From positions 21,266,995 through 21,330,994 of the forward strand of contig OZ037765.1 of assembly GCA_964035545.1 (NCBI GenBank): a DNA stretch of 64,000 bases, given 5' to 3'. The notes below the pieces were generated by a model that was given only the letters and a program-made list of their open reading frames with translations, did not search any database and had not been told where the DNA came from. A program made the translations under genes and the position numbers. The DNA is from Bugula neritina (lineage: Eukaryota; Animalia; Bryozoa). This document shows, piece by piece, positions 28,401-54,115 of the stretch (the stretch's first letter is position 1; every line of letters begins with the position of its first letter).

Positions 28401-28537
28401 GGCCTACAAACAAAAATTATCACATATTAAAAATTCTCACCGAAAAAAAGAAACCTCAGTTTTTTACAAACACAACCTCTGAATATGATGACAGTTGAAA
28501 ACATTTACACAAAAATTATATCAATTATAGTAAAATT

Positions 28538-29619
28538 GGGTGTGACTAAAATGGGGTCAAAAACTAGGGGGTGTCGGGAAGAATTCAATACATGTATTTT
28601 AACTTAATTTCATAGTTATTTTTCAGTTTCTAGACATGCTGACTATGGAACCATATACATTAAACTAGTAAAAATACCGAGAGGAATATTAACAAAAAAA
28701 AATGTTCACAAAATGTAAAAATAAAACTAAAAATCTTTGCGACACCCATTTTAGTCATTTGGGGGGTGCTTTGACTAAAATAGGTGTCAGGGTGATTTTT
28801 GCTTTATTCTTTAGCTTTTTGGCAATTTTTGTTGCTAAATTGGTTGTTGATCAAAGCTTTAGGGAAACTCTAATATATAATAACTGTTTCACCCCAAATG
28901 ACAGTAGTATTAAATAATAATTTACAATAATAAAATATAATAAAAACCGAAACTATCAGTGACACTGCCTAGAGTTATCTTCCCTTAGTTCTTAGTTATG
29001 TTTTTATGATTTTTTTATAATATTTGTGAGTATTAGAGATTTTAATAATTTTAATTAGTAAATGCAAGTAAAAGTTTCAACATGACATAATTTATAGTAT
29101 CCAAAACCGCCCAGAAAGCTAAAAATAAAGCAAAAATCACCGTAACACCCATTTTAGTCACTGGTGGGTGTTTTTACTAAAATGGGTGTCGCGAAGATTT
29201 TTAGTTTTGTTTTCACATTTTGTAGACATTTTTGTTTGTTAATATTGCTCAAAACGTTTTTAATAGTTTAAAGTATATGTTTCATAAGTTAGCATGTCTA
29301 TGATCATAACGATAACAGTAAAATTAAGTGGAAATTAAATTTTTGATGAGGAAAGATAACTCTCGATAAGTTTAGTTTTTGTTAAAAATAATTTAATTTA
29401 ATCATTATTTGTTTATGTTTTTTGGTTTAAACAATTGTGAAACGTTAATTATTCACTGAAGATTTATTTAATAACAATTTCAGCAGTCACAAATGTCTAA
29501 AAATCTGAAAATAAAACGAAAATTTTTCGTGACGCCCATTTTAGTCAAAACCCCTCCTTATGACTAAAATAGGTGTCACAGACCGCGACACCGGGTGGCC
29601 ACCCATTTTAGTCACACCC
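28538..29619. mobile_element. Non-autonomous foldback/MITE DNA transposon, Mutator-like (9-bp TSD)
   Basis: 18-bp perfect TIR GGGTGTGACTAAAATGGG...CCCATTTTAGTCACACCC; AGTAAAATT duplicated at 28529-28537 and 29620-29628. Units 2 and 3 show the empty site (tatagtaaaattcgtc). Internal ~200-bp inverted repeat (~28630-28830 vs ~29100-29300) and repeated ACACCCATTTTAGTCA motifs. The superfamily is inferred from TSD length only. Confidence 0.9.
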
Positions 29620-29992
29620 AGTAAAATTCGTCACCATAGCCAAATTTCTTAAAGCTCAAGTTCAGGTAATAAATAAACAAACAAATTTTAAGAAACTATT
29701 ATCAATTACAATAAACAAAAACAAAATTTGTGTTGATATTATATTTACCACAATAATACTTATAGCCCATTAGTATAATTAAAATTGTAAAATAATATAG
29801 TTACATATTTATAGCCTCTAACAGTAACAACTAGTTCCAATACTAATACCAGAATACAAATTGTTCTCAAATTACAAACTGGATTTATAAATAATGATTA
29901 TATCATTTAAAAACAAGTTAGATAAGCTATGTAAAAATAAAAAACTAAATAATCACAATATATTGGTAATAATAAAATTAATAATAATAAAA

Positions 29993-30410
29993 GGTGATCA
30001 CAGTGAAAGAAAGCAGTGTAAGATGTGTAATGCAAAGGAAGAGTATATTTTTGAGCATATACTCAGTAAATGCAAGAAGCTAATATAAAATGAAACATGA
30101 CTATGTGACCTTAATGACTACAAAACAAGAAATGACTTGACCTGAATCAGCAAAGATATTTCACAACATAAAAATCTTGTGGGCTTTAAAAATATATACC
30201 TACCAGGCGTGTGGTAGTTGACAGAAGCAATTTAAAACAATAATAATCTTTATGGCTGTTCGTGATGACAATCAGTTAAAAGAAAAAAGCAAAAAAGAGA
30301 GAAGGATATAATCACCTGGCACTAAAATTAAAACTAATTTGCATGTGAACAACCTAAAGAAAAGTTGTCCTCAGGCCATGGTAATTAGAACTCCTAAACT
30401 TGGGGCTACA
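29993..30410 (+). mobile_element. Degenerate 3' fragment of an RLE-clade (R4/Dong-like) non-LTR retrotransposon, unit 1
   Basis: Frameshifted remnants in the expected order: CKMC..E..FEHILSKCKKL (CCHC knuckle), HDYV, KILW, VVDRS, MAVRDD..KEK..Y.HLA, PMVI. This matches the zinc knuckle + restriction-like endonuclease C-terminus. Confidence 0.62.
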
Positions 30411-31132
30411 TACACTTACAGGAATTCAGTCTGGAACTGCATGGTATTACTTCAACTTGAAATTATGTAAGTTATGTGACAAATTGCCCTATTGCAATGA
30501 ATAAAACTTATCAACTGTATAACATTGGCAGTAAAGAAGCATTAAATGTGAAAGACTCGTAAGCTGTACTTGTTATGACTCATAATGATAATATATAATT
30601 AAATATCAACTTCAGGATCACTTCAATATAATTATCACTATGACCAACAGTGTTAAGATCTGCCAACACTAACAGTATGAGTAACTACTAGTACTACTAC
30701 TAGTGGTAGTAGCAGTAGTACCCAGTATTATAATTACAGTTTGAGTATTATAATTACTATTACAGTATTAGTTTAAAATTACAATTTAAATTAGTAGTAC
30801 TATTAATATTACTATTAATACTAGTAACTGTAAGACTACGTCACTGTCAGTAGCTGGAACACTAACTCAGTAACTGAAAGTGTAAGATCTTCATCAATTT
30901 AAGAAAAGTCCTATCTATCAAGGCCTGGTAGAATCAGCGTGTTTACTATCTTATGTAAAATTAACTCAATAATAGGAGGCAATATTAGCTCAAGTTGTGA
31001 AGAAACCAATAAATAAGGATCATCATTTTTATTTCGACCACTGTTGGACTTGGAAGAAACTATATATTATATAACTCTGAGAAGAAACTATTTTATTGTT
31101 TACACTAAGCTAGAATGACGCAAATAACCAAG

Positions 31133-31335
31133 GTTCTAGAATAAGTAATTGCCTCATTGAATTGATAAACAAGTAGAATCTTCTAGCACAGTTTTAATTG
31201 GATACCACTGTGTTTTATGATTGGTTGAAAAGAGGAAATCCCAAGACTTCCACACGAGGCTAGAAAATACTGCAGTCGTCTAGAACGTTCTTAAATAGTA
31301 TAAAATAGCATTCCCAACCGTTTCTAGTCATTTAC
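31133..31335 (+). promoter_or_regulatory. HSP70 copy 1 promoter: heat-shock elements, TATA box, initiator
   Basis: gTTCtaGAAt 31133-31142; aGAAtcTTCt 31175-31184; cGTCtaGAAcgTTCtt 31277-31292; TATAAAA 31299-31305; TCATTT initiator-like at 31328, ~30 bp after TATA. Confidence 0.8.
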
Positions 31336-31417
31336 TGATCGAGCCGAAAAGTAGTTACAACTACCACATTACTACGACTTTCAAGGATATAAACGTCAAC
31401 TTTCAACGTATAGCAGT

Positions 31418-33880
31418 ATGGGGAAAACAATTGGAATAGATCTTGGAACGACCTACTCGTGCGTCGGAGTATTTCAGCATGGAAAGGTGGAAATTATAGC
31501 AAACAGTCAAGGTGAGTACAAAGCAGTGCCAATAGTATTACTATTGGTACACAAATTAAAAGCATATTCATTATCATAATGATAATCACTTACTCTAAAA
31601 CTCTTAATTTTTTTTAATAATGGTGATTTTTATGCAAAAATTAAACAACTGTGGGTTTAAAAAATATTGCAATTTTTATGACTATTAATTTCTCTTGATC
31701 CACTTTTCAATAACTAACATATAGCTATTACAATAATTATACATAGTTTTATAATGATAATCACTAATAATAAACCAACTTAAAAATAAATCATTGCTGT
31801 GCAGAGCAATATGAATATGTAGTTGCATAGCATTAAAATAACTTACTTTAGACCATCAATTCTCGAATTATTGATATTTTACAAAATAATTGCGGTACAT
31901 TTTTTCTCCTTTAGTAATTTGTGATAAACTCCTGGCTAGAATATCAAGTATATCACTATTAGTAATACCAGTGTCATCTGCTAGTGATAAATAAGATTTA
32001 CAGAAAACGCACTGTTCTATCTCATCTCATTAAATTGAATAGATACACTTATGAGATTTTAATGTAATTTATATTTCTAATTGCAGGAAACCGAACCACT
32101 CCAAGTTATGTAGCCTTCACTGATTCTGAAAGACTGATAGGAGATGCAGCTAAGAACCAAGTTGCTATGAATCCAACAAATACAGTCTTTGATGCAAAAC
32201 GATTGATTGGAAGAAAGTTTGCGGATGCTTCTGTGCAAAAAGACATGAAAACATGGCCTTTCAAAGTGATAGATGACAATGGTAAACCAAAGATTCAAGT
32301 CGAGCACCTTAATCAAACTAAAGTACTAACACCTGAAGAAATAAGTTCAATGGTGTTGACAAGCATGAAGGAAACAGCGGAAGCATATCTTGGAGAGAAA
32401 GTAACAGATGCTGTAGTCACAGTTCCTGCTTACTTCAACGATTCTCAGACAAGCCACCAAAGATGCAGGAGTGATTGCAGGGCTGAATGTGAAGCGAATC
32501 ATTAATGAACCAACAGCTGCTGCATTGGCTTATGGGTTGGATAAGAATCTGAGTGATGAAAAAAATGTGTTGATCTTCGATTTGGGTGGTGGCACATTTG
32601 ACGTATCAATCTTGAGCATTGACGAAGGATCGCTGTTTGAAGTAAAATCCACTGCCGGGAACACACATCTAGGAGGTGAAGATTTTGATGACAGGCTGGT
32701 TGAGCACTTCATTAAAGAATTTCAAAGAAAGCATGGTAAAAATATTAGAGGAAACCCTCGCTCACTCAGACGTCTGAGGACAGCATGTGAAAGGGCAAAG
32801 AGAACTCTCTCAAGCAGTGCTCAAGCAAATATAGAGATAGACTCCATGTTTGAAGGAATAGATTTCTACACCAGCATCACAAGAGCAAGGTTTGAGGAAC
32901 TTTGTGCTGACTTGTTTCGAGAGACATTGCAGCCAGTAGAGCAAGCTCTAAGAGATGCCAAGATGTCTAAAGGAGATATACATGAAGTGGTTCTAGTTGG
33001 TGGCTCTACTAGAATACCAAAGATTCAAAAGCTACTGCAAGAGTTCATGGGTGGAAAACAGTTGAACAAGTCTATCAACCCTGATGAGGCAGTAGCTTAT
33101 GGTGCTGCTGTGCAAGCTGCCATTCTTTCTGGTGACCAGCATGATACCATCAAAGATGTGCTGCTAGTTGATGTAGCAGCTTTATCTCTTGGCATAGAAA
33201 CAGCTGGTGGAGTCATGACCAATCTCATCGACAGGAACACCCGCATTCCTACCAAGCAGACAAAAGTTTTCACAACATATGCCGACAACCAGCCAGCAGT
33301 CACCATACAAGTGTTTGAAGGAGAAAGATCAATGACAGTCAACAACAACCATCTTGGCAAATTTGATCTATCAGGAATTCCTCCAGCACCCAGAGGTGTT
33401 CCACAGGTTGAAGTTACCTTTGACTTGGATGCAAATGGGATTCTCAACGTTTTGGCAGTAGAGAAAGGATCTGGGAAATCCAGCAACATCACCATCACCA
33501 ATGACAGGGGTAGATTAAGTCAAGCTGAAATTGATGCGATGCTGGCTGATGCAGAGAAGTTTAAAGCTGAAGATGAGAAACAGAGAAAGCAAGTGCAAGC
33601 TAGGAACTCATTGGAAAATCTTGTGTATCAATACAAGCAAGCTGCTGAAGAAAACGAGTCAAAATTGTCAGCAGACGACTCCAAACTGATAAAGGATGAA
33701 TGCCAGCAAGTCATAAGTTGGCTGGACAACAACAACTTGGCAGATGAAGAAGAGTACCAGCACCAGATGTCAGAACTCCAGAAAAAGTGTTCTCCTATCA
33801 TGTCCAAACTCCACCAATCAGGAGGAGGTAGCAACCATACAAGTAGCCAATCAGGACCTACAGTTGAAGAAATGGACTAA
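31418..33880 (+). pseudogene. HSP70: Cytosolic inducible-type HSP70, copy 1, with a 2-nt deletion frameshift near 32447 (pseudogene or assembly error); exons 31418-31511, 32087-33880
   Basis: [32 protein letters not shown]|[10 protein letters not shown]. Reads GATTCTCAGACAAGCC where copies 2 and 3 read GATTCTCAAAGACAAGCC, splitting the ORF into 32167-32505 and 32471-33880. Otherwise almost identical to copy 2. Confidence 0.85.
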
Positions 33881-35026
33881 TAGCAATGTACACTTTCTCT
33901 ACTTGATCATGTGATTTTTTGCCAGTACTTTTCATTTTTGTGCTTATCATTATGTTCTTCCACCAAAGTTATGTTAGTAATTAGTATGATAAATATGTAT
34001 ATTCTTATGGTATTTTTGTATAAAATTTATGTACTCATACCTATTTATTGTGGTTTCTTGCAAGTTGTATATTTGTATATCTATAGTTAATGCAATAGAC
34101 TATCTTTTAGCTCAAAGAGCAACCAGTTATGCTTGTTATTTATGTAGATATATTTTTGTTTAGCAAACAATCTCTAACAATATTCAATTCTGTATAGTAT
34201 TATTAGCATATAAATAAAAAATAATTTAGAACTCAAAGATTTCGGAGTATTGTGTAAAAAAAGTTGTCAAAAAGTCAGTTAAGCAATTAATATCACCAGC
34301 AAAAAATGTTTGCCTACATGTAGTCTTATACAATAAAAATATCACATTGTAAAAGCTGATAGCAAAACCACACATCTGAATACCTTGCATACTTCAAAGC
34401 TGTTGGCTAATGATACATAAAAACAAACTATTGGTACTTAGTTCATAACAGAGAGAAGTTTTGTCCAAAGTATATTTATAATGATCATTTATATAAAATT
34501 AAAACAATCAATAATTTCAAACAAAATTAAATTTAATAATACACCAATTTATAATACCAAGAATCTGCAAGCAACTTTCTTCACTAAATTACTTCTAAAT
34601 TTCTAATTTCTATAATTTGCTTAAAATCTTTTGATGTATACTTTTTTAATGCATTTCTTTTAATGTGCAAATGTGGTGATCAACAGTTAATGCTGTATCT
34701 TTTATGCAATTGAGCATAGAAAAGCACAACATCAACTGTTGAAGTTTTTGTATTAGTTAGAAAATAGCAACTCAACACACAGTGACCAAAGTATAATATA
34801 AAAAGTAATTTTTGTACATAAAACTACTGTATGTTAGTTATACAGAAAAGGGAAGCTAGTTTTACTGCAAAAAATATATACTTTCAAACAACAAGCATAA
34901 TAACATGATTGAATAATAAGAGTAGCACATAATTTAAAGGTGTACTTTATATAATATCAAAATTCCTTATATGTAAATTTGGAACAAATATACTAAACAG
35001 ATTGCATAAGTACAGTCCAATAGTAC

Positions 35027-35097
35027 CTAGCAAGCACCAGCAACCCATCATGCTCAAGTAGATCAGCAAAGATCTGCTTTTCATATTCCAACAACAT
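35027..35097 (-). pseudogene. ERCC4: Duplicated XPF coding exon 1 (orphan copy, unit 2)
   Basis: 71 nt encoding [23 protein letters not shown], identical in protein to 28400-28330 (one synonymous CTG>TTG). GT donor retained. No exon 2 follows within the unit. Confidence 0.88.
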
Positions 35098-35309
35098 GGC
35101 CTACAAAGATTATCACATAATAAAAGTTCTCACCGTAAAAAAAGAAACCTCAGTTTTTTTACAAACACAATCTCTGAATATGATGACAGCTAGAAACATT
35201 TACAATTAATTTATATTAATTATAGTAAAATTCGTCATCATAGCCAAATTTCTTAAAGCTCAAGTTCAGGTAATAAATAAACACACAACTTTTATAAAAT
35301 ATCATCAAT

Positions 35310-36375
35310 AGACGATGTATGTTTGGTACAATTAGTACCTTGTACTAAATCTAAAACACTCACCACTATAACTTATATAAACTTCTGCAAGTTCAAATGT
35401 AAAATGCATACTTCTAGAAAATAGCTGTGCAACTTTTATTACATGCATTATTTTATTTCATATCTTAACTTTATGAACCATGAGTTCATTTTTCAAAATG
35501 TTTAAATTAAATGCTTAAAAAATGCATTTAAAAAATGTATTCCTGCAAAAATGCCCTGGAGCAGCTTGACCACAACCCCAGCTGTTCTGGCAAAACACAT
35601 TTAATGGTTTTTTTATTGACATAGTGGTGAATGAGCTAGTTGTTTTTGGCAGTTGAATATAGCCACGTTGCAGGCAATTTTATACGATTCTGATTGGCTG
35701 GACTCTACATGACCAGCTAATGATTGTATCTGATAGGCCTAATAATGCATTTGTCTTTGAAAATGTAGAGTTTTATATGAGTTATAGTGGTGATATTTTA
35801 GAGTTGGTACACGCCCCTTTTTGGTTGAGTTTTATAGTCTGATCATGCTGTAGTCATCTATACAACACTTGAGTGTATGGGGAAATTATTAGTATTACGA
35901 AATCTGTTTTGGCTTACTTTGCTATGCCAGTTTTCTGACTTGGTTTGTAAGCAACTATGTAGGCAGTTATAACTTAGGATGATTTCATCAAAGGTAGACA
36001 TTACTTAGGCCTTAGAACATCAAATCAACCAGTGCTGTTACTTGGTTGTATTGTAAAGCATTATCGAGAGCATAGCGCACTAGCACAGTCACTGAGCTGC
36101 AATGGCAGTGCATGCTACACCAAACTTATCAGTTCTATTATAATATCTTATGTAAGGCACGTAACACTAGGCTAGTCTCTGTTAGTATGTAGAGCAGTAG
36201 CACAGTTACAGCAGTCACACCACCCTTCTCTATCCTGTCTACCTAGCACTGAGGTTGCAATAATGATAATCATTTCATGGTTTAGTTTTAAATCCATGCA
36301 TACTACTAAATACATTCTCATAGTCTGGTTACTTTGTGTGCTTCAGTTTACTTTGATGTACTTATTCAAAAAATT
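35310..36375 (+). repeat. Left terminal inverted repeat (~1066 bp)
   Basis: Reverse complement of 43487-44554. By eye it differs by only a few substitutions and one 2-nt indel. The match ends after cttattcaaaaaatt. Confidence 0.95.
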
Positions 36376-36735
36376 GTTTTACCTAGCATTTTGTCAACAG
36401 TTGTTAACAACAGACAATGCATGTAGACGTTTATCTATATATGTGTGAGTTCGCGAGCTTTCTTTCGGCTCTCTTTGTTGAAATCTATATATTATTATGA
36501 ATTAAAAGCATTTACATTTGTATAATATCTTCAGATCATATTTGACCTAGTCTTGTATTAACTATTTATTTATTAAAATAAGGCTTGGTATAAAAATAAT
36601 AAGTTTCAAAACAAATGAAATAGTTAATGTATATAAACAAAATATGCATATATTTGTATTAAATCAGTGGCAGTCATACAAAACCTCAGTCCAAAATGAA
36701 GATCAAGGAAAGACCTACTTTCAGTATTTTAACTT

Positions 36736-39054
36736 TCACTCCATTTTTGCTGCAGCTAAAGGCTTTGTTTCTATTTCTGAAAAACAGGTCTGCTTTTTTG
36801 AAGGCTCCTCAGTTTGATTATGCTGCAGCCAAAATGCTGGGCTGAGATAATCGTTAAAAAATCTGGACAGTTTGATGAACATGGTTTCTGTGAATCTCAA
36901 GTCATGTGTTATGCGTTGAGTTACACTTCCCCTAACAGTAAATACAAAAAAATCACAATATTTAGCTTTAGTTATTTTAAGCTGACCTTGTACTTGGCCA
37001 TAATATTGGTGTTTCTTTTTGAGGATTGACTTTGTGCCATCGAAAGATTTTTTTAGAAAGGAAACTGTATTGAATGATGGGAGATCATCTAAAGCCGGGC
37101 ACTTAATTTCCAGAATGCCTTCCCCGTGACACTCACAGCTCACTATCCCATCAGGGGAAGCACCTAAAAATGCAAACTCTGTGGACAAAAACAGTCCACA
37201 GTCCCTAACAGTTAGTTTCTTGTGATGAGGGCTGTTTAAATTTAAGTATGTCTGTTTTGCTTTAGCTTCCATTGAGCGGCCATGCTGAATGGAAGGTACA
37301 GAGCTTATGTCTCCTGGGCTTATTAATGAGCTTACTAATTTGCTCATGTCAGTACGTGCGTCCTTAACTTGAGATTCCATTCGTGTCTTCACACGATAGA
37401 AATTAGAAGCAGTAATTCGGCCATGTCTGAGCAATTTCCAAAGGGGGCTGTCACTCTGCTTCACTGTTGCTGCTTCTATTTCCCACACTTGATTTCTTGT
37501 TATGGACATGGTTCTGACCAATTTAGAGAAATGCTCTGGACTATCTGCGCTCTCTGCCAGGGTTGACATAACCAGATCTTTAAATGGTTCAACTTCTATA
37601 AGAAAACTTATCAATCTATATGTATGCTTAATGTACATACACAACACAAAATTTTTGTTGTGTATATCAAACATATGCAGTATTACAGAAAATAGAACAT
37701 TTAGATGGTCAGACATAGTACTCCTTATGTGTTGTACCTTTTAATAATGTGGTTTCTTGAACTTTTTGCCATTCTTCAAGGCTTGGTTTTTTACCATATT
37801 TTTCAAGAATATATGTACTCTCACTAGCAAAGATTTTAAGTTCTTCCTCCCACTCTTTGAAAATTACACCTCCATTGTTACTAGTAGCCACTTTTCTATG
37901 CATTCGGGCATAATTCCTGTCTTTTCCTGTAAACAGTAAAGTGCAGCAGTTATAACTATAAATGGCACCCTAATTCTATTTTACCAACAGTTAAAATAAT
38001 ATTTATTAACTCAATTATTATTTTAGTAAAAAATTCGCTAAGTAACAGTCATAAACAAAGTTACTTTAACAATTTAAGCCAAATATTTTCTCTACTTTAT
38101 TCTTGATGCTTACCTTTTTTATAATCTGGTTTAAAAAAATGAAGGTCAGCAAGACGCCTTGGTGTACACACACTTTTGGTGGAGCGTTTCCAGTTGCACT
38201 CTCCGTCAGTGCAACTTCTTTTGAATGGCTCTTTTTGGGATATATAATCAAGTTTGAAAACAACTGCTGCTATATGGTTGCAAGAGGAGCTAAGCCTGAA
38301 ATAAAAAATTTAGTTCAGCATGATATGTAAATATTTTTTAAAAACACAGAAAATCATACTCTGGCAAAATTTGCACACAATACTTATTTATAACTATCAT
38401 TAAGTCATTTGAAAAATTTGATAGAGCCGGAATATAATATGTCATTGCTTACCCTGCAGTACAGCTGCACCAAGCAGAAAGTATCTTCCCAGTTATTTGA
38501 AGGCAAGCAATCCAAACACTATGTGGGGTTGCAGAAATTCTTTCACTAGGTCTACACACTGTTGTAAAATATGCTACATTAGATGAAGGTTCATGGTAAT
38601 ATTTTATGGTGCTAACCCAATCATCCGCAAAATATGCATAGGCTTTTCCTTGCTTATATCTGCTATACATTTCTGCAGAAAGAGCAGTGTTGGCTTCGTT
38701 CACATACATAACAAGATCACTAAATAAAACTTTTGGCCACATTGAAATACTGTCTCTTTCTTCACTCCAATCTTTAATAGTCAGTGGATCCAGTATTACT
38801 GTGCCGTCATTAGTTTTAAGAAGATCTAAATATTCCCGTTTGCTTTGTGCTTCCATCTCTATTGCCGACTTTGCAGGCTGATAGTCAAGGTGCATTGCTC
38901 CATAAACTAAAGAGATTAACTCAACCTTACTTTTTTTACTATGTGGCAAGTTTCTGATTTTTAGATATTCTTTTAGAGCAGTTACTTTCCATGTAGAAAT
39001 TTCTTCAAATGTCTCTGTCAATTGTTTTTCTTTTGGAGAAACTGCTAATGCCAT
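36736..39054 (-). CDS. Transposon-borne SAP + SWIM zinc finger + YqaJ/lambda-exonuclease-like nuclease, ~610 aa; exons 39054-38453, 38295-38114, 37926-37738, 37595-36736
   Basis: Four GT-AG exons in phase (602+182+189+860=1833 nt, no stops). SAP-like WKVTALKEYLKIRNLPHSKKSKVELISLV; SWIM AWCSCTAG|LSSSCNHIAA; SCTDGECNW. YqaJ motifs TVKQSDSPLWKLLRHGRITASNF, HGRSME, GLFLS..FLGASPDG, GILEIKCP, YYGQVQGQL, CDFFVF. Confidence 0.9.
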
Positions 39055-40481
39055 GTTCACAACTGTAGCTGGTCCAGGATATTACAAGTTTATTTTTATG
39101 TTTGCTGGTAAAAACACAAAATAAGTTAAATTGATCATCATAATAAAAAGTGATATTTGTACATAAATGAAGTTACCTAAGAATGTGTAACAGGCATCAG
39201 TATACAGAGAAAGAAAATAGAATTATTTACTAGAGAAACAGTATTTGTTGCAATATGGTATGGTGTGTCATTATAACTATTAATTTTGAGTAAAACATGT
39301 ATAAAATATAACTAACCTGTTGGCTCATGTATACAGATCTCTATAAAATTGAATAAAGCAAAGGTCACAAATAATGGCAGTTTTTATAAGAAAGCAAAAA
39401 AAGCTAGTTCTAATAAAGTTGTGAAGAGTTTTCAAACTGAGCTGCGTTTTGCTGTATCTCTAAAACTACTGCAGCTGATGAGTATTAAACTATGGTATAC
39501 ATTCACTGCATAGCCCAAAGGTAGCTACATAGCCAGCAGAGGTAGGGAAATAAGGACAGTAACCCTAACAATAATGGTATAACCCTAAATCCAACAGTAA
39601 ACAGAAGGCAAATGAATCACATCACAGAGCTTGCTGACGTAGTCTATCTAATCGGAACTAGGAATTTTAATGAGAAATTTGTTGTTGCGACAGCATGAGT
39701 GAATCATACTGTGGGTGTCTGACAATCATTTACATTCATGTTGTAAATGTAAAATCTGCTAAGGATATCACTTATGTTTTGCTTGCTATATTATAATACA
39801 AATACCTTCTGTTAGAAACTTATGTTTATGTCATTAGTTTGTACGGTACTCGGGCATGCTGGTACTCATACTCATCTCCTCATAATGAGATTTAGTGGAT
39901 TATAGTAGCTACACAAAAGGTGAGTAACTATTTCAACAATAATTAACTAAAGTCAGTCGCTGAACATGTTATTTCTGTCCACATTTGGATAGTTCTGTAG
40001 CAAAGCACAGAAGTTTATTGAGCATATGCAGTCTATGTATTTTAGTAATAGATAAAAATTTGTTAGTCTTTCACTTTTTGCATTTCCAACTAGATCTGGC
40101 TAAAAATAGATTTATTTCAATCAGTTTACTGTGAAGGGCTGAGATGCTTGTGAGCAATTTTTCAAATGCTGTTCTTATTAAATGCACAACCTTTTGCAAA
40201 CAGGTAAAGGTTTCAGTCAACAATGGCTACTATATCAAATTTCCTCAACTTTTACTTACTCAAAGTTACCAACATTAATTACTGGCTTTAGCACAAAACT
40301 GTGTTGACAACTTATATTCCAAAATATCTGTGGTATATTCCTTAACTTTACAGCATGCAAGCATTTATGTTGGGGAAAAAACTTTCACTATCTTTTGTAA
40401 CACACATTTAGTTATCAGGTTTTGTTCTGGTAGGAATCTAATCCAATACCGAATATTTTGCTTGGCATTTTACAGATCGGC

Positions 40482-41215
40482 ATGAGAATCTGCGCAGTTA
40501 AAAACTGCCATAATGGAGAGTATAAACTTCAAAAGTTTCGAAAGAGCAATCCTGGAAATTGGATCCTTTCGCTCTTTATACGTTTCCACGAAAAAGTGAG
40601 CAACAGCGTCACGATTGGTGTGTTTTAATAAATCGGAAGGATGAATTAGGAAATTTATGGACTCCAAAACAACAATCCAGAGTTTGCTCCCTACATTTTA
40701 AGGATGGTCAGCCAACTGAGCAAAATCCAAACCCAACCCTTCACTTGGGATACAAATGCACCAAAACCTATAGTTCAAGAGGCACAGAAAACAGTGGTTT
40801 TGACAGAACAGCTGGAAAAAGAAAAGAACAGAAAATATATTCAACAAATGTAAAGCAACAAAATTCATCTTACAGCCATCCTTGTAGGCAAACTTCATTA
40901 GATGTACCTGAGCAAAATGAGACTTTGCCAGCTAATGCAAAAAAGAGTCCTAGGCTTTCAAATATTGGACCAAAAGTTACAAGAAAAAGCTCAGGACTTT
41001 CCAAGTTTAAACAAAAGGCAGGTGTTAGGAAAATTAAAGTTTTCAAAACGTTTACCACAACAGATGAAAGAACCAAGTTTTACACTGGAATACCTACACG
41101 ATCTCTATATTTTTCTTTAGCAAGGTAAAAGTTTATTACCGTACTGTTAAAAACACACACACCACACACACGCACGCGTATACATATATATATATACACA
41201 CACGCACGCGTATAC

Positions 41216-41312
<97 letters not shown>

Positions 41313-42568
41313 TATATACATATATATGTTTTTTTATTAAAAAATGCCACACCCTACTATATAGTTTCATACATTAAACTGCACTAAAAATAAATAAAAT
41401 GAAGAAAAATATAATATATTGAATTAAATCATCATTAAATATAAATATTGTAAATCGAAGATGTTAAAAATATGTTTACCCATCTCAAAAATTGAAAATT
41501 TTATGCATCAAGGCTCAACAGGCAACAGTGGCATTAAAGTTACTGTTGTGTGTTTAAAATAAATAGCAAAACTTATGAAATATTTTAAACATAAAATATT
41601 ATAAAGGAATGATAGTTAGCACAAATATTTGAGGCTATAAAAGTTTTTATTCCTCTTTTTATAATTATTAGACACAGATTAAGCTACATGAATATAAACT
41701 GAGTAATTAAATATATGTTGAACATACACTGATATAATTTCCAGCTGTCAATTTATTTTTTATTCTTTTATATAGATTTATATGCCCAAAGATGAGGTGT
41801 CTTACTCTCAGAAAAAAGTTAACAAGACAAGATGAGCTTTTGTTGGCTTTGATGAAGCTGCGTCAAGGTCTGCAGTTTCAAATGCTTGCTGACCTTTTTT
41901 ATATTTCTAGAATGCTAGCAAGCAAAATCTTCAAAGATACATTAACCATTCTAGCAAAAGAATTAAAAAATCTCATTATTTTTCCCCCTAGAGAGAAATT
42001 GAACATTCCTCTCAATTTTCAAAGTCAGTATCCCAACATTAGGTGCATTATTGATTGCACAGAAATATTTATATGCAAGCCACAGTCGAAGTTGGCACAA
42101 GCCTTGACATGGAGTGAATATAAAAAATCAAATACAATCAAATACCTTATTGCAATCACACCCAGAGGCACTATATGCTTTCTTTCACCTGGAATGGGAG
42201 GTAGGGCCTCAGACAAGTGCATAGTTAATGATTCTGGCTTCTTGGGTCTCATAAACCCAGGTGATGTGGTCATGGCAGATAAAGGCTTTATTATTGAAGA
42301 AGAGCTAATAGGAGCTGGAGCCAAGTTGGCCATGCCACCTGGGAAGAGAGGCCATTCTCAAATGACTAGAGCGAAGTTACTGCAAACTAAATTGATTGCT
42401 AACCTTCGAATCCACGTTGAAAGAGCAATAAAACGAGTAAAGGAATTTAATATTTTAAATGGTCCTGGGGGTGTAAGCTTACTGTTGACACCGCTTTTAG
42501 ATAAAGTAATGATAGTCTGCTGTGCTCTCTGTAATCTGCAGCCACCTTTGGTAGCCGATGAAGTGTAG
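40482..42568 (+). CDS. THAP-domain DDE transposase (HTH_Tnp_4 + DDE_Tnp_4, Harbinger/ISL2EU type), ~478 aa if a 1-nt frameshift at ~40526-40560 is corrected; exons 40482-41124, 41776-42568
   Basis: THAP start [11 protein letters not shown] (frame of 40482) continues in another frame as [24 protein letters not shown]. Then [10 protein letters not shown]|gt...ag|A splice, [23 protein letters not shown]. Catalytic motifs [25 protein letters not shown]. Confidence 0.9.
41154..41327. repeat. Compound (CA)n/(TA)n microsatellite inside the transposase intron
   Basis: Directly visible CA and TA runs with cacgcacgcgtatac interruptions. Confidence 0.95.
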
Positions 42569-43486
42569 CACTTTTATAATAATATTCTTCTTTATGTGCT
42601 ATTGTATACGTATTTGCTATACCACTATGCTTTATAAATAAAAGTCTGATATTATTACACTTTTGTCATATCTGCTTATCTTAATGATTGTTGAGAAGGA
42701 TTTTGGGTGAAAGTAAATGGCAGCTCAGACTTGATACTCATTTTATAAAATGCTAACTTATGCATAAATAATATTCTGTTAGTACCAATATTGTATGCAG
42801 TCAGCGTTGAAATATAATGCCTTCGTTTTGATGGAATCGACATTTTCTCTGTAGCTATCATGTTGCATCACACAATATGAAAAAATATTCAAGCCCAATG
42901 TTTAATGACCGTTTATTCTAACATTCCAAATTATTAGGAGAAAGCCTTTGTATTTTACCCAACTGACTAAAAAATGTATTGGAAACTCATTAGTAAAGTT
43001 GTTGATGTTATTGCATTAGCTTCAGAGCTAAGTACAGATGTTTCATCCAGCAATGACTTGAGACTGAGAAGTTCAACTTTAATATCACTTATACAAACAG
43101 GGCAAATTGCATAAAACATTACTTCACAGTTAAAAGAAACTAAACTATATTGTCCCATGGCTGATGTCATTACATTTGTAGAATAATCATACTGTTTAGC
43201 TAAGTAAATCGTATACAAGAAAGGGTTATCAACATGGTACCATGGTGATAATACCAACTAACAATATAGACCCACATGCAAGGCACTACATGCTAATACT
43301 CATTTTTATACAAAATGTCTACATTATCTATTGCTAATACCTGTGCATTTAAACTCAATGCAGATGAATATGTGACGGAGTAAAAAAATGCTGTTCTACA
43401 AATTTAAAATAAAATAGTATTGGGTACACAAGCAAATAATTTATGGCTATAGCTAGGCTAATGCATTTGTAATGAGCGTGTGAAAT

Positions 43487-44554
43487 AATTTTTTGAATAA
43501 GTACATCAAAGTAAACTGAAGCACACAAAGTAACCAGACTATGAGAATGTATTTAGTAGTATGCATGGATTTAAAACTAAACCATGAAATGATTATCATT
43601 ATTGCAACCTCAGTGCTAGGTAGACAGGATAGAGAAGGGTGGTGTGACTGCTGTAACTGTGCTACTGCTCTACATACTAACAGAGACTAGCCTAGTGTTT
43701 TACGTGCCTTACATAAGATATTATAATAGAACTGATAAGTTTGGTGTAGCATGCACTGCCATTGCAGCTCAGTGACTGTGCTAGTGCGCTATGCTCTCGA
43801 TAATGCTTTACAATACAACCAAGTAACAGCACTGGTTGATTTGATGTTCTAAGGCCTAAGTAATGTCTACCTTTGATGAAATCATCCTAAGTTATAACTG
43901 CCTACATAGTTGCTTACAAACCAAGTCAGAAAACTGGCATAGCAAAGTAAGCCAAAACAGATTTCGTAATACTAATAATTTCCCCATACACTCAAGTGTT
44001 GTATAGATGACTACAGCATGATCAGACTACAAAACTCAACCAAAAAGGGGCGTGTACCAACTCTAAAATATCACCACTATAACTCATATAAAACTCTACA
44101 TTTTCAAAGACAAATGCATTATTAGGCCTATCAGATACAATCATTAGCTGGTCATGTAGAGTCCAGCCAATCAGAATAGTATAAAATTGCCTGCAACGTG
44201 GCTATATTCAACTGCCAAAAACAACTAGCTCATTCACCACTATGTCAATAAAAAAACCATTAAATGTGTTTTGCCAGAACAGCTGGGGTTGTGGTCAAGC
44301 TGCTCCAGGGCATTTTTGCAGGAATACATTTTTTAAATGCATTTTTTAAGCATTTAATTTAAACATTTTGAAAAATGAACTCATGGTTCATAAAGTTAAG
44401 ATATGAAATAAAATAATGCATGTAATAAAAGTTGCACAGCTATTTTCTAGAAGTATGCATTTTGCATTTGAACTTGCAGAAGTTTATATATGTTATAGTG
44501 GTGAGTGTTTTAGATTTAGTACAAGGTACTAATTGTACCAAACATACATCGTCT
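43487..44554 (-). repeat. Right terminal inverted repeat (~1068 bp)
   Basis: Reverse complement of 35310-36375. Confidence 0.95.
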
Positions 44555-44773
44555 ATTACAATGGTGTGGTGGCTCGTGGAGCTACCAGCAGCACGATACG
44601 CAGGGTCGCGTAATTGACCCGGAACAGTGACAGCCAATTAGCAACTTTAGTAGTTAGTAGCAGTAATAGTTTTCCCGCTGTTAGTCAGTCGAAGTTAGAG
44701 TGTTGAATAGTCTAGATGTGTGAAGTATTAAATGTATTTGTATCGTTTTTGTAATGTGTTATTGTGTTTAAAA

Positions 44774-46629
44774 CAGGGATGTAGTGGTACCCATACGGTC
44801 CCATACGCCGTATGGCCTAGAAGAAAATAGACTGTTCTAGGCCATACGCCCGTATGGGCATAATTATTTTTGAAAGATGATTAGTGCCACAGGATAGTTA
44901 GGGCATTCTCACTGAGAATATCATAAATTTCGCTCACAATCTAATTTAAGTTCTTGCTATGTTAATGCTCTGTGGGTGGCATGCGTGTTGCCTACTTGTG
45001 ATTGTTTAGCCTGAGATTACACTATGAATAATATGCAGCTATCAACATTCCATCTTCTCATCTCTACGTGTTCATTGAAGCGCGAAGTGCTGTGCATTGG
45101 TGATTACTAAGGAAACATAATTTCATTTTCAGTGTATAAATCACTAACTTGTAGAAAATCTATGAAGGCTATTGAAAAGATAAAAAAATTTGCCATGCAT
45201 AAATTTTTCAGGTTTCCGACAGTGTTTGTTCTATTCGAATACCATGCTTTCCTGCTGAGATATTTGGCATGGATTGAAAAATAAATTTTTCAGGTAAAAT
45301 TGGCCAAAAATGAGTAGATTTTTGTCTAACTTTGCAAAAAAATATTGAAAACTCAAAAAAGCAGGCGCTCTGAGGAACAGGAAGATCTAAAACATGGTTT
45401 TTAAATTTTAATTCTAGCACAATTAAGTGAGGTTTTATTTTGCAGGACTGAATTCTTATAATATACCAATAATGTGGCCTCAGCAAGGCTGTGACAGCTA
45501 GAAGGTTGCCCTTATCTATTTTGTGTAGACTTGCATTTTGTTAATAAGCAATGGAATTTGGAAAAAGCCAACATGAAATCCAGAAATAAAATCAAAATGT
45601 CTTCAAGAAACAGTACCAGCTGCACCTGTAGACCTCAGTGATAAATTTTCATTAGCCTCTCCTACACATGTGTAGGAGAGGCTAATGAAAATTTATCACT
45701 GAGGTCTACAGGTACTATATCCACCTTTTGGTCAAAAACCTAGCGTTATTGCATGTTAATTATTAATGCAATAAGGTTTTGCAAACTGTACACCACCATA
45801 AGTAACCTTTTATGTTTGATTGTACTAATGTCTGGCTTTACATTTAATCATCTTCTAGGTTAACACATATTAAACCTGTCAAATTTGTTCTCTTGGGGAT
45901 ATTTCCTTGATGTATCTAGTGGAAGCTCAGGGGTTTTATTTTAACATACTCTTCTTGGGTGTACTTTATTGTGTGTAAGGAGGTGTGTAAGGAGGTGTGG
46001 CGGTATCACCTTATGGATTAGACTAGTACTCTAATAAACTCCAAATAGGTTTCAACCAATTTCTGCTTGCCAATGAGTTATCAATTCAAATTGCTCTTTG
46101 TAAATAACCAACACACATTTTCTGATTAGCAATCTTCCTCTGTTCTGATCTATTATTCTTTTTCTGTGCACGGCAGTGTATTAGTTATTTAAAGTAATCA
46201 GGTTGCATTTGGAGAGCACTTGTTACCTGCCTCTATCCTTCCATCTTTTTGAGATATTCAGCAATTTTTCTGTACAGGTTGGACTTAGTGTCAGAATAAA
46301 CCTAACTGCAGTTGAGTAAGACCACATTACATTACATTACAGTCAACAGGTATGGGACAAGACTGAATATTTATATAGTTTGCAGCAATGACCTGTCGTC
46401 ATGTAGCTGGTATGGTATGAAAATAATAGCGAGATGCACATTTCAACACAGATTTCTTTCAGAAGAATTATAATTCACAATGGCTTTAAATTGCATAAAT
46501 TTGCATCAGAAGCGCTCTGAGGGCTTCGGCGGCCGGGGCGCTGCCCCGGACCCCGCCGGGGGCCTAGGCGGCCCCCTGGACCCCCGGCCTGAGAGTATGG
46601 CCTAGAATATTTTTGCCACTACAACCCTG
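44774..46629. mobile_element. Non-autonomous hAT DNA transposon, 1856 bp
   Basis: 14-bp TIR CAGGGATGTAGTGG / CCACTACAACCCTG (1 mismatch); exact 8-bp TSD GTTTAAAA at 44766-44773 and 46630-46637. Subterminal CCATACG/GTATGGCCTAG repeats and GC-rich hairpins at ~46520-46590. No transposase ORF. Confidence 0.9.
45624..45713. repeat. Perfect 90-bp palindrome with no spacer
   Basis: ACCTGTAGACCTCAGTGATAAATTTTCATTAGCCTCTCCTACACA|TGTGTAGGAGAGGCTAATGAAAATTTATCACTGAGGTCTACAGGT, centre at 45668/45669. Confidence 0.95.
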
Positions 46630-47009
46630 GTTTAAAATATATACTCGTTCACTCGACTTATCCTGGTGAAGTTCTCTAGCAAGTAATTAGACTCTCTGGA
46701 TTGCATATCGACCCTAATTCTGAAAATCATAACAATAAACAAAAACAAAATTTTCATTAATATCATAATTACCACGATAAAGCCTATTAGTATAATTAAA
46801 GTTATAAAATAATATAATTACATATTTGTAGCCTCCAACAGTAACAACTAATTCCAATACTAATACCAGAATACAAATTGTTCTCAAATTATAAACTGGG
46901 TTTATAAATAATGATTATATCATTTGAAAACAAGTTAGATAAGCTATGTAAAAATAAAAAACTAAATAATCACAATATATTGGTAATAATAAAAGTAATA
47001 ATAATACAA

Positions 47010-47425
47010 GGTGATCACAATGAAAGAAAGCAGTGTAGGATGTGTAATGCAAAGGAAGAGTATATTTTTGAGCATATACTCAGTAAATGCAAGAAGCTAA
47101 TATAAAAAGAAACATGACTATGTGACCTTAATAACTCCAAAACAAGAAATGACTTGGCCTGAATTAGCAAAGATATTTCACAACATAAAAATCTTGTGGG
47201 CTTTGAAAATATACACCTACCAGGCGTGTGGTAGTTGACAGAAGCAATTCAAAACAACAATAATCTTTATGGCTGTATGTGATGACAATCAGTTAAAAGA
47301 AAAAAGCCAAAAAGATAGAAGGATATAACCACCTGGCACTAAAAGTAAAATTAATTTGCATGTGAACAACCTGAAGAAAAGTTGTCCTCAGGCCATGGTA
47401 ATTAGAACTCCTAGATTTGGGGCTA
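47010..47425 (+). mobile_element. Degenerate RLE-clade non-LTR retrotransposon 3' fragment, unit 2
   Basis: Paralog of 29993-30410 (CRMC..EHILSKC, HDYV, KILW, VVDRS). Confidence 0.6.
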
Positions 47426-48202
47426 GATACACTTACAGGAATTCAGTCTGGAACTGCATGGTATTACTTCAACTTGAAATTTATGTAAGTGATGTGACAA
47501 ATTGTCCTATTGCCATGAATAAAACTTATCAACTGTATACCATTGGCAGTAAAGAAGCACTAAATGTGAGAGACTCGTTAGTTGTACTTGTTATGACTTA
47601 TAATGATAATATAAAATTAAATATCAACTTCAAGATTACTTCAATGTAATTATCACTATGGCCAAAAGTTTTGAGATCTGCTAACACTAACAATATGAGT
47701 AACTACTACTACTACGACTAGTAGTAGAGGTAGTACTAGTAGCAGTAGTACCCAGTATCATTATTACAGTTCGAGTATTAGTATTACTATTAGTTTAAAA
47801 TTACAATTTGAATTAGTAGTACTATTATTATTACTATTACTAATAGTAAGACTAAGTCACTAAACTGAAACTATAACCGTTATACTTCAATGGCTGTAAC
47901 ACTAACTGTAAGTCACTAAGAGTAACTGTAAGTCACTAAGTGTAACATCTTGATCTTCATTAATTTAAGAAAAGTCTATCTATCAAGGCCTGGTGGAATC
48001 AGTGTGTTTACCATTTTACGTAAAGTTAACTCAATAATAGGAGGCAATATTAGCTCAAGTTGTGTCGTAACCAATAAATAAATAAATAATAAGGATCATC
48101 ATTTTTACTTTGAGCACTTTTTTACTTGGGAAGAAACTATATCACTCTGAGAAGAAACTATTTTATTGTTTACACTAAGCTAGAATGACGCAAATAACCA
48201 AG

Positions 48203-48403
48203 GTTCTAGAATAAGTAATTGCCTCATTGAATTGATAAACAAGTAGAATCTTCTAGCACAGTTTTAATTGGATACCACTGTGTTTTATGATTGGTTGAAA
48301 AGAGGAAATCCCAAGACTTCCACACGAGGCTAGAAAATACTGCAGTCGCCTAGAACGTTCTTAAATGGTATAAAATAGCAATACCAGCCGTTTATGTCAT
48401 TTA
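48203..48403 (+). promoter_or_regulatory. HSP70 copy 2 promoter (HSEs, TATA at 48369)
   Basis: gTTCtaGAAt, aGAAtcTTCt, taGAAcgTTCtt, TATAAAA and TCATTT as in copy 1. Confidence 0.8.
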
Positions 48404-48487
48404 CTGATCGAGCCGAAAAGTAGTTACAACTACCACATTTACTACGACTTTCAAGGATATAAACGTTGACTTTCAACGTATAGCAGT

Positions 48488-50942
48488 ATGGGGAAAACAA
48501 TTGGAATAGATCTTGGAACGACCTACTCGTGCGTCGGAGTATTTCAGCATGGAAAGGTGGAAATTATAGCAAACAGTCAAGGTGAGTACAAAGCAGTGCC
48601 AATAGTATTACTATTAGTATTGGTACACAAATTAAAAGCATATTCATTATCATAATCACTTACTCTAAAACTCTGAATTTTTTTAATAATGGTGATTTTT
48701 ATGCAAAAATTAACAACTGTGGGTTTGAGAAATATTGCAATTTTTATGACTATTAATTTCTTTTGATCCACTTTTCAACAACTAACATATAGCTATTACA
48801 ATAATTATACATAGTTTTATAATGATAATCACTAATAATAAACCAACTTAAAAATAAATCATTGCTGTGCATAGCAATATGTAGTTGCATAGCATTAAAA
48901 TAACTTACTTTAGACCAATTCTCGAATTATTGATGTTTTACAAAATAATTGCGGTACATTTTTTCTCCTTTAGTAATTTGTGATAAAACTCCTGGCTAGA
49001 ATATCAAGTATATCACTATTAGTAATACCAGTGTCATCTGCTAGTGATAAATAAGATTTACAGAAAACACACTATCCTATCTCATCTCATTAAATTGAAT
49101 AGATACACTTATGAGATTTTAATGTAATTTATATTCCTAATTGCAGGAAACCGAACCACTCCAAGTTATGTAGCCTTCACTGATTCTGAAAGACTGATAG
49201 GAGATGCAGCTAAGAACCAAGTTGCTATGAATCCAACAAATACAGTCTTTGATGCAAAACGATTGATTGGAAGAAAGTTTGCGGATGCTTCTGTGCAAAA
49301 AGACATGAAAACATGGCCTTTCAAAGTGATAGATGACAATGGTAAACCAAAGATTCAAGTCGAGCACCTTAATCAAACTAAAGTACTAACACCTGAAGAA
49401 ATAAGTTCAATGGTGTTGACAAGCATGAAAGAAACAGCGGAAGCATATCTTGGAGAGAAAGTAACAGATGCTGTAGTCACAGTTCCTGCTTACTTCAACG
49501 ATTCTCAAAGACAAGCCACCAAAGATGCAGGAGTGATTGCAGGGCTGAATGTGAAGCGAATCATTAATGAACCAACAGCTGCTGCATTGGCTTATGGGTT
49601 GGATAAGAATCTGAGTGATGAAAAAAATGTGTTGATCTTCGATTTGGGTGGTGGCACATTTGACGTATCAATCTTGAGCATTGACGAAGGATCGCTGTTT
49701 GAAGTAAAATCCACTGCCGGGAACACACATCTAGGAGGTGAAGATTTTGATGACAGGCTGGTTGAGCACTTCATTAAAGAATTTCAAAGAAAGCATGGTA
49801 AAAATATTAGAGGAAACCCTCGCTCACTCAGACGTCTGAGGACAGCATGTGAAAGGGCAAAGAGAACTCTCTCAAGCAGTGCTCAAGCAAATATAGAGAT
49901 AGACTCCATGTTTGAAGGAATAGATTTCTACACCAGCATCACAAGAGCAAGGTTTGAGGAACTTTGTGCTGACTTGTTTCGGGAGACATTGCAGCCAGTA
50001 GAGCAAGCTCTAAGAGATGCCAAGATGTCTAAAGGAGATATACATGAAGTGGTTCTAGTTGGTGGCTCTACTAGAATACCAAAGATTCAAAAGCTACTGC
50101 AAGAGTTCATGGGTGGAAAACAGTTGAACAAGTCTATCAACCCTGATGAGGCAGTAGCTTATGGTGCTGCTGTGCAAGCTGCCATTCTTTCTGGTGACCA
50201 GCATGATACCATCAAAGATGTGCTGCTAGTTGATGTAGCAGCTTTATCTCTTGGCATAGAAACAGCTGGTGGAGTCATGACCAATCTCATCGACAGGAAC
50301 ACCCGCATTCCTACCAAGCAGACAAAAGTTTTCACAACATATGCCGACAACCAGCCAGCAGTCACCATACAAGTGTTTGAAGGAGAAAGATCAATGACAG
50401 TCAACAACAACCATCTTGGCAAATTTGATCTATCAGGAATTCCTCCAGCACCCAGAGGTGTTCCACAGGTTGAAGTTACCTTTGACTTGGATGCAAATGG
50501 GATTCTCAACGTTTTGGCAGTAGAGAAAGGATCTGGGAAATCCAGCAACATCACCATCACCAATGACAGGGGTAGATTAAGTCAAGCTGAAATTGATGCG
50601 ATGCTGGCTGATGCAGAGAAGTTTAAAGCTGAAGATGAGAAACAGAGAAAGCAAGTGCAAGCTAGGAACTCATTGGAAAATCTTGTGTATCAATACAAGC
50701 AAGCTGCTGAAGAAAACGAGTCAAAATTGTCAGCAGACGACTCCAAACTGATAAAGGATGAATGCCAGCAAGTCATAAGTTGGCTGGACAACAACAACTT
50801 GGCAGATGAAGAAGAGTACCAGCACCAGATGTCAGAACTCCAGAAAAAGTGTTCTCCTATCATGTCCAAACTCCACCAATCAGGAGGAGGTAGCAACCAT
50901 ACAAGTAGCCAATCAGGACCTACAGTTGAAGAAATGGACTAA
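48488..50942 (+). CDS. HSP70: Cytosolic inducible-type HSP70, copy 2, 629 aa; exons 48488-48581, 49147-50942
   Basis: 94+1796=1890 nt, intact. Signatures [38 protein letters not shown]-terminus GPTVEEMD, no GGMP repeats. Confidence 0.97.
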
Positions 50943-52151: not shown

Positions 52152-52654
52152 GGCCTACAAACAAAAATTATCACATATTGAAAGTTCTCACCGAAAAAAA
52201 GAAACCTTAGTTTTTTTTACAAACACAACCTCTGAATATGATGACAGTTAGAAACATTTACATTTTATTTATATTAATTATAGTAAAATTCGTCATCATA
52301 GCCAAATTTCTTAAAGCTCAAGTTCAGGTAATAAATAAACACACATCTTTTATAAAATATTATCAATTACAATAAACAAAAACAAAATTTGTGTTGATAT
52401 TATATTTACCACTATAATACTTATAGCCCATTAGTATAATTAAAATTATAAAATAATATAATTACATATTTATAGCCTCCAACAGTAACAACTAATTCCA
52501 ATACTAATACCAGAATACAAATTGTTCTCAAATTACAAACTGGGTTTATAAATAATGATTATATCATTTGATAACAAGTTAGATAAGCTATGTAAAAATA
52601 AAAAAACTAAATAATCACAATATATTGGTAATAATAAAAGTAATAATAATACAA

Positions 52655-54032: not shown

Positions 54033-54115
54033 CTGATCGAGCCGAAAAGTAGCTACAACTACCACATTACTACGACTTTCAAGGATATAAACGTCAACTT
54101 TCAACGTATAACAGT

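Follow-up and report, generated by a model that had tools for sequence, protein, structure and literature searches.

The ISL2EU transposons have been defined by three features: duplication of the AT dinucleotide in the target A|AT|T, a transposase of THAP-HTH-DDE type, and a second gene whose product contains a YqaJ exonuclease domain (PMC4482050); the gene pair has been described likewise in two further studies (PMC9179366, PMC4122938). The published catalogue comprises 25 families from 14 animal species (PMC4482050); their ends measure 6-259 bp and mostly begin with GG, and the elements average ~4.8 kb. In the literature that we searched, no bryozoan ISL2EU family is described and no paper reports an experimental test of the role of the ISL2EU nuclease, in line with an earlier note on the DNA analysed here, which was made from the sequence alone and was aware of no experimental role for the exonuclease. 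The present analysis concerns a stretch of 64,000 nucleotides (hereafter the window, to which all coordinates without a contig label refer) from the bryozoan Bugula neritina (assembly GCA_964035545.1, contig OZ037765.1, positions 21,266,995 to 21,330,994 of the forward strand). It contains a 9,245-bp element (35310-44554) that is almost certainly a member of ISL2EU, in the PHIS superfamily. As all three published features are found in it, the kind of element was already known, and the earlier note was right both in naming ISL2EU and in regarding the pairing of these genes as no novelty. The nearest database relatives of the transposase include THAP-DDE proteins encoded beside YqaJ genes, and the THAP-DDE/YqaJ gene pair is also adjacent in two unrelated assemblies. 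Comparison of family members shows that the nuclease gene is constrained as strongly as the transposase gene, and that a derivative devoid of it has nevertheless moved.

The element and its two genes

The element starts with AGACGATG and ends with CATCGTCT, and its termini form long inverted repeats, of 1,073 nt on the left (35310..36382, + strand) and 1,075 nt on the right (43480..44554, - strand), which are 99.4% alike, with 6 differences between them, and both start with AG. One copy of the duplicated AT is located immediately to the left (35308..35309, preceded by A) and the other to the right (44555..44556, followed by T), i.e. the flanks read AAT|element|ATT, as expected for the target A|AT|T. 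The AAT|...|ATT flanks were also found at 8 further insertions checked (the full-length copies C7, C8 and C1b, a deletion copy on C6, one 2-kb derivative, and the relatives L031, L032 and L033, all described below), and the clean bounds given in the earlier note turned out to be exact to the base. The element shows cut-and-paste behaviour with a 2-bp staggered target. The sole sub-repeat candidate for a binding site inside the ends is a weak internal inverted pair of 38 nt. A virus-derived island was considered as another origin of this insertion and rejected, because the ends, the duplications, the empty site and the multiple dispersed copies indicate transposition.

The filled site has two copies of AT, while a paralogous empty site, TCAATTACAAT (52363..52373), has a single one at 52366-52367. 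The empty site lies inside a duplicated segment: the left flank of the element (33938-35309) is 96.4% identical to 51000-52367 over 1.37 kb, whereas the match of the right flank extends over 8 bases only, up to a ~2.2-kb insertion (44563-46728), with homology to the paralogue resuming at 46729. The exact empty site reported earlier is therefore present as a single-AT paralogue, with a right flank that is matched over those 8 bases. Local segmental duplication has given the host locus three paralogous segments, which are 88-96% identical (28183-31813; 33938-35309 together with 46729-48884; 51000-54500), and the ISL2EU transposon resides in the middle one only, which is the source of the empty site. 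The insertion at 44563-46728 is a second, unrelated repeat that abuts the ISL2EU element directly, belongs to a family with at least 40 copies in the genome at 90-96% identity, and lies between the two copies of an 8-bp duplication of its own (ATTACAAT / ATAACAAT); duplications of this length are typical of hAT-type elements. It is in the AATT at the edge of this 8-bp duplication that the ISL2EU element resides.

The transposase gene is encoded on the + strand by two exons. Exon 2 (41776..42568) is open and comprises the helix-turn-helix domain and the catalytic core (Pfam, searched exon by exon: DDE_Tnp_4, 6.6e-45 over the full profile length; HTH_Tnp_4, 6.6e-12), while exon 1 (40482..41124) codes for the THAP zinc finger and a linker. 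Exon 1 of the window copy has lost one base at 40556/40557 (GGAAAT, versus GGACAAT in three sibling copies); with this C missing, the two halves of the THAP finger are in different frames, the frame that begins at the ATG ends after 48 codons, and the THAP score is 27.5 bits (partial), compared to 37.6 bits for the intact exon of a sibling. The window copy thus lacks a full-length transposase and is very probably non-autonomous; its mobility would depend on sibling copies with two open genes, such as C7 and C8. On this point the earlier note, which regarded the element as complete and as a good template for reconstruction, has to be corrected: the frameshift makes the window copy a poorer template than first supposed, and C7 and C8 have both genes open. 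The intron (41125..41775) holds a compound (CA)n/(TA)n microsatellite (41131-41340), which is length-variable among the four near-identical copies of the family (indels of 14-36 nt) and makes up most of the length difference between them.

The nuclease gene is transcribed divergently, from the - strand, and its predicted ATG (39054) is separated from that of the transposase (40482) by 1,427 bp (39055..40481), in agreement with the two divergent spliced genes ~1.4 kb apart that had been claimed. The intergenic region is presumed to act as a bidirectional promoter; its part from 39591 onward is kept in the nuclease-less derivative described below. The gene consists of four exons: exon 1 (38453..39054), with a SAP-like helix pair, a beta-rich module and the first half of a SWIM-type motif; exon 2 (38114..38295), with the second half of this CxC...CxH motif; exon 3 (37738..37926), a linker; and exon 4 (36736..37595, stop included), with the whole YqaJ / lambda-exonuclease-like PD-(D/E)xK domain. 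The splice junctions were predicted from GT-AG borders, frame continuity and agreement with the junctions of P0025, a gene model built independently in the public Bugula neritina assembly. All three introns are of the GT...AG type with consistent phases (split codons Gly, Gly and Glu), and the predicted coding sequence of 1,833 nt (610 codons and a stop) has no internal stop, so the description of the gene as fully open across four exons stands.

Exon 4 matched the Pfam YqaJ family with confidence (2e-18; 67.5 bits versus a cut-off of 22), and is, with THAP, HTH_Tnp_4 and DDE_Tnp_4, one of the four domains found by Pfam among the six that the earlier note expected. The sequence search with this exon also reported LHK-Exo (3SYY, 2.3e-6) and mimivirus R354, and the catalytic motifs align to those of 3SYY. 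An alignment of 62 sequences revealed invariant or nearly invariant residues W52, R56, R59, T61-A62-S63, A145-S146-P147-D148, E162, K164 and Q200-Q204, all of which are kept in the window nuclease; D148, E162, K164, Q200 and Q204 coincide with the ASPDG...EIKCP core and the QVQGQL motif already pointed out in the earlier note. In the W..R.G.ITAS motif, the Arg is aligned with an Arg of LHK-Exo; the equivalent residue of lambda exonuclease, Arg28, is reported to bind the 5' phosphate in the work on 3SM4.

The AlphaFold (AF2) model of exon 4 has a pLDDT of 93.4 and a pTM of 0.90, and the Foldseek search identified LHK-Exo (3SYY: 5.2e-9, TM 0.74 on the target) and lambda exonuclease (1AVQ: 1.2e-8, TM 0.68) as its closest structures, followed by herpesvirus SOX/BGLF5, R354 and Cas4. 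The model of the full-length homologue P0017 yielded the same fold matches and additionally displays a module of four strands and a helix at the position of the SWIM motif (pLDDT 70-84). For neither model is a TnsA-type endonuclease among the matches listed. The C-terminal half of the 610-codon protein thus has the fold and the core of a PD-(D/E)xK nuclease of the lambda-exonuclease type, as had been claimed.

The N-terminal modules are less clear-cut, and of the SAP-SWIM-YqaJ architecture originally put forward it is the YqaJ part that is confirmed by Pfam. The SAP score of the window nuclease is below the threshold (14.7 bits versus 23.9), while 32.9 bits is reached by the corresponding segment of P0031, a relative from a sea cucumber; a profile of 7 sequences compared with solved structures reported SAP domains (2KVU, 1JJR, 1ZRJ) as three of the five top matches, with non-significant E-values of 0.3-2.8. 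The SWIM-type motif WCSCTAG|LSSSCNH straddles the junction of exons 1 and 2 and is conserved in the relatives. It was scored on two homologues: P0017 remained below the Pfam threshold (17 bits versus 19.6) and P0025 gave no match, though the database name of the latter is "SWIM-type domain-containing". Both assignments are therefore putative and made at the level of motifs and homologues. Among 60 eukaryote-type YqaJ relatives, 13 have PHD fingers in place of SAP/SWIM, SAP was found in 2 and SWIM in 1; the same nuclease thus occurs in repeated fusions with differing chromatin- or DNA-binding modules. On the contig of the sea-cucumber homologue, the queried gene is the only annotated one.

Family copies and selection on the nuclease gene

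The genome (216 Mb in 321 contigs) contains three other full-length copies, C7:6554030-6563318 (99.8% identical to the window copy), C8:2186243-2195527 (99.25%) and C1b (99.6%), the last of which (L025 and L026; C1:14654820-14671564) carries a foreign insertion of ~7.5 kb inside its right arm, with six bases of the element (positions 8659-8664) on both sides of the insertion. The family is young, the four full-length copies being 99.2-99.8% identical. Apart from the missing base of the window copy, they show no coding indel and no substitution that makes a stop, so both genes are open in C7, C8 and C1b. The substitutions are distributed unevenly, with 12 in the 3,269 nt of coding exons and 52 in the 5,325 non-coding nucleotides (Fisher p = 0.001). 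The family also includes deletion derivatives of 3.8 and 3 kb and at least 20 end-only derivatives of ~2 kb, which are 86-89% identical to the ends of the window element. The latter (e.g. C5:12560719-12562799, L027) are foldback-like, consist nearly entirely of the long arms between AAT|...|ATT flanks, and far outnumber the gene-bearing copies.

An older subfamily is represented by L030 and L038, which have decayed nuclease remnants, and by L031 and L032. The latter two are 5.95 kb long and 98.5% alike, have an open transposase gene, and lack the region corresponding to 36324-39590 of the window, which includes the nuclease gene. Their deletion junction is common to these two copies only, and they reside at different loci, each surrounded by AAT and ATT with an AT duplication of its own. 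A derivative with an open transposase but no nuclease gene has thus transposed at least once, from which it follows that the nuclease is dispensable in cis. The possibility raised in the earlier note, that the nuclease gene may be missing from related autonomous copies, is in this way realised in part, i.e. by one derivative at two loci. In L030 (C9:3768500-3778400) the open transposase gene is close to that of the window copy (dS 0.086), but its nuclease remnant, which is interrupted by stops, is far more diverged (dS 0.47); the unequal divergence suggests a mosaic or recombinant element.

More distant relatives were also identified. L029, on C5, is a diverged two-gene subfamily of 7,530 bp with ends of ~0.63 kb, in which every exon of both genes is open. 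L033 (its part 3364-7460, C8:~1294860-1298960) and L034 represent a related 4.1-kb family with many copies, in which transposase exon 2 is 83-84% identical to that of the window element and neither the THAP-coding part nor the nuclease gene was found; its arms of ~1.02 kb are 99-100% complementary, and at its 3' end the transposase reading frame runs into their inner edge. In a distant lineage (L035, C3:24832500-24839000; L036, C6:2825500-2832000; L037, C5:13008000-13014500) a SAP-like/SWIM/YqaJ gene (33-39% identity) is paired tail to tail with a THAP-DDE gene (27-46%), at a distance of ~400 bp; no long inverted ends were detected in these three stretches. Finally, the public Bugula neritina assembly contains a ~91% identical copy (L043), with frameshifts in several exons and ~4.4 kb extra in the transposase intron. 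The earlier note held that a near-identical database entry would remove the novelty of the family; an entry for this copy does exist, annotated as a hypothetical protein only.

The codons of the window copy were compared with those of two of these relatives by Nei-Gojobori counts, which were obtained for each exon and then added up. Between the window copy and L029, omega is 0.167 for the nuclease (dS 0.73) and 0.180 for the transposase (dS 0.76); between the window copy and L043, the values are 0.265 and 0.261, at dS ~0.09. Constraint is seen in each of the four nuclease exons, also in those with the SAP-like part and the SWIM motif, and omega of exon 2 is as low as 0.05-0.06. The nuclease is therefore under purifying selection as strong as that on the transposase, and the neutral evolution that the earlier note had named as a possible refutation is rejected. 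Within the young family, 8 coding changes are nonsynonymous and 4 synonymous (5 and 2, respectively, in the nuclease). We did not adopt these counts as a test of selection, as 12 coding substitutions are too few and post-date the insertion.

The 1-kb arms evolve in concert within each copy. In C8, the two arms have 8 substitutions and a 2-nt indel in common that set them apart from every other arm, and only 1 site differs between them; L031 and L032, which have no nuclease gene, differ from each other at about 11 sites that are the same in both arms of a copy; and the 1-kb arms of L033, which also lacks the nuclease gene, are 100% identical.

Possible role of the nuclease

The overall explanation that we favour, and consider reasonably likely, is that of a young ISL2EU cut-and-paste family, represented in the window by a transposase-broken copy, in which the nuclease is a selected accessory that would act in trans and may favour homology-directed repair. 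The transposase would bind the ends via its THAP finger and cut and paste the element. After the DDE cleavage has left 5'-phosphorylated double-strand ends, the nuclease, tethered to the DNA by its SAP-like/SWIM module, would act in trans and chew the 5' strands; the resected break (the donor gap and/or the element ends) would go to homology-directed repair, which would restore the element at the donor site and lead to a higher net gain of copies. The nuclease would in this case be an accessory fitness factor, outside the core chemistry. The nuclease probably acts in trans as an exonuclease and is of importance to the element, while its specific role in resection towards homologous repair can be proposed only tentatively, and the "cut-and-resect" mechanism of the earlier note is likewise something that we infer. 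We also speculate, with considerable doubt, that the exonuclease may make cut-and-paste transposition effectively replicative, if resection after excision led to the refilling of the donor gap from the sister or homologue, and if the same recombination homogenised the 1-kb ends. An accessory role is suggested by the nuclease-less L031 and L032, which nevertheless moved, by the more than 20 derivatives of ~2 kb composed of the terminal inverted repeats only, and by Spy, the sister clade of ISL2EU, whose transposase is active alone in cells (PMC11304231).

A PD-(D/E)xK enzyme that has stayed in tight linkage with a DDE transposase over deep divergence, and is equally constrained, could also be its core partner, which would cut the second (5', non-transferred) strand in the manner of TnsA/TnsB, so that excision would need both proteins. 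To our knowledge, it has not been established how PHIS transposases cut the second strand. Herpesvirus relatives of the fold are also endonucleases, and herpesvirus proteins are among the fold matches of exon 4. The closest folds are however those of processive, end-dependent exonucleases, with no TnsA-type enzyme among the matches listed, and the 5'-phosphate-binding Arg has a conserved counterpart in the alignment. Taking into account also that nuclease-less copies with an open transposase moved (though the nuclease could have been supplied in trans) and that the Spy transposases of the sister clade work alone (PMC11304231), we regard a TnsA-like cutter as quite unlikely. The nuclease might alternatively serve the kilobase ends, if resection were followed by annealing or gene conversion between the 1-kb arms and damaged ends were repaired in this way. 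This would agree with the concerted evolution of the arms in C8, L031 and L032, but homogenised arms are present also in L031, L032 and L033, where the nuclease is missing, and host recombination between close inverted repeats suffices in other systems. Moreover, most catalogued ISL2EU families have the YqaJ gene and ends of just 6-259 bp (PMC4482050), so the gene cannot exist for the sake of long arms, and such an end-maintenance function appears unlikely.

The existence and mobility of nuclease-less derivatives, the decayed nuclease remnants beside open transposase genes in L030, and the 5 nonsynonymous to 2 synonymous changes of the nuclease within the family could be taken to mean that the gene is a passenger, captured from a virus or phage and devoid of any role. 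The within-family counts are however too low, and the changes of too recent origin, to be informative about selection, whereas the values of omega (0.17 over a dS of 0.73 and 0.27 over a dS of 0.09) equal those of the transposase, all catalytic and family-invariant residues are kept, and the linkage of the two genes is conserved at 33-39% identity within the genome as well as in other animals. The codon data thus largely refute the passenger explanation, which we consider highly improbable. The varied N- or C-terminal modules of the relatives (PHD in 13 of 60, SAP in 2, SWIM in 1) hint at general targeting of chromatin or DNA in preference to the element ends, and hence at yet another target: the nuclease could degrade unintegrated excised copies, as a form of self-limitation, or could be directed to chromatin or host DNA by variable reader modules. 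We found no specific evidence for such a target, element-level selection is more readily accounted for by an increase in the number of copies, and we therefore judge it improbable.

Several points also weigh against the trans-acting accessory exonuclease that we prefer. Purifying selection shows that the nuclease matters, but is silent on what it does. The nuclease-less derivative is known from two copies only, a number at which weak dependence on the nuclease and its full dispensability are indistinguishable. Host enzymes already resect breaks, and the benefit of an exonuclease encoded by the element is unexplained. Neither SAP nor SWIM is established on statistical grounds for the window nuclease, and the activity, expression and splice junctions of the genes are all predictions. 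The missing C of the transposase gene could be an assembly error, which is however less likely since the lost base is a lone C outside any run, with no change in the length of a homopolymer.

The YqaJ gene of ISL2EU has been catalogued for well over a decade, and the present family offers a natural system for its study: near-identical open copies, the transposase-broken window copy, a nuclease-less mover, many end-only derivatives and a diverged sister subfamily. The nuclease-plus and nuclease-minus derivatives in one genome represent natural controls, which makes it testable whether the exonuclease of a transposon is a switch of the repair pathway, a second-strand cutter or a factor that maintains the ends. 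If the replicative reading were true, the family would represent a eukaryotic transposon equipped with an enzyme of its own for the initiation of recombination.

Relation to known nucleases and transposons

The window nuclease resembles lambda exonuclease, LHK-Exo and the RecE-type YqaJ enzymes (1AVQ, 3SM4, 3SYY) in its fold (TM 0.68-0.74), the D...ExK core, the QxQxQ helix and the aligned Arg. It differs from the phage exonucleases in sequence (19-25% identity) and in its fusion to an N-terminal region of ~320 residues with the SAP-like and SWIM-type modules, and the window element encodes no annealing partner of the Red-beta/RecT type. Its similarity to the TnsA/TnsB pair of Tn7, where a DDE protein likewise works beside a PD-(D/E)xK nuclease, is an analogy of function only: TnsA, which cuts the 5' strand, is akin to restriction endonucleases, while the window nuclease has an exonuclease-type fold, with no TnsA among the matches listed.

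Other eukaryotic DDE transposons that carry an exonuclease are known from the Kolobok superfamily, where different lineages gained such enzymes independently, KolobokE a lambda-exonuclease-like one and KolobokD one of the DnaQ type, and where the processing of transposition intermediates by the nuclease is merely presumed by the authors (PMC9587614). The Kolobok transposases belong to another superfamily, and the nuclease of KolobokE forms the downstream part of a fusion with the transposase domain instead of being encoded by a separate gene. The PIF/Harbinger elements have a transposase of the same superfamily as the window element and also possess two genes, with a second protein needed beside the transposase. 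Their second gene, however, encodes a Myb/SANT DNA-binding protein, their target duplication is TWA (3 bp), and their transposase has no THAP domain. Spy elements share with the window element a related transposase of the DDE_Tnp_4 type, an AT-rich target and invertebrate hosts, but insert into AAA|TTT without target duplication and have a single gene, with neither THAP nor nuclease (PMC4122938, PMC11304231).

The nearest group is ISL2EU itself, with which the window element shares the target A|AT|T with its duplicated AT, a transposase of THAP-HTH-DDE type, the YqaJ gene and the animal host. Against the published catalogue, its ends are much longer (1,073-1,075 nt versus 6-259 bp) and start with AG instead of the usual GG, its length is 9.2 kb versus a mean of ~4.8 kb, and both of its genes contain introns. 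The two genes are arranged head to head, whereas they are tail to tail in the relatives from other assemblies and in the distant lineage L035-L037. The kilobase ends, the AG start and the size are departures in degree from the ISL2EU catalogue and not in the definition of the group, and the window element leaves the known kinds of elements unchanged.

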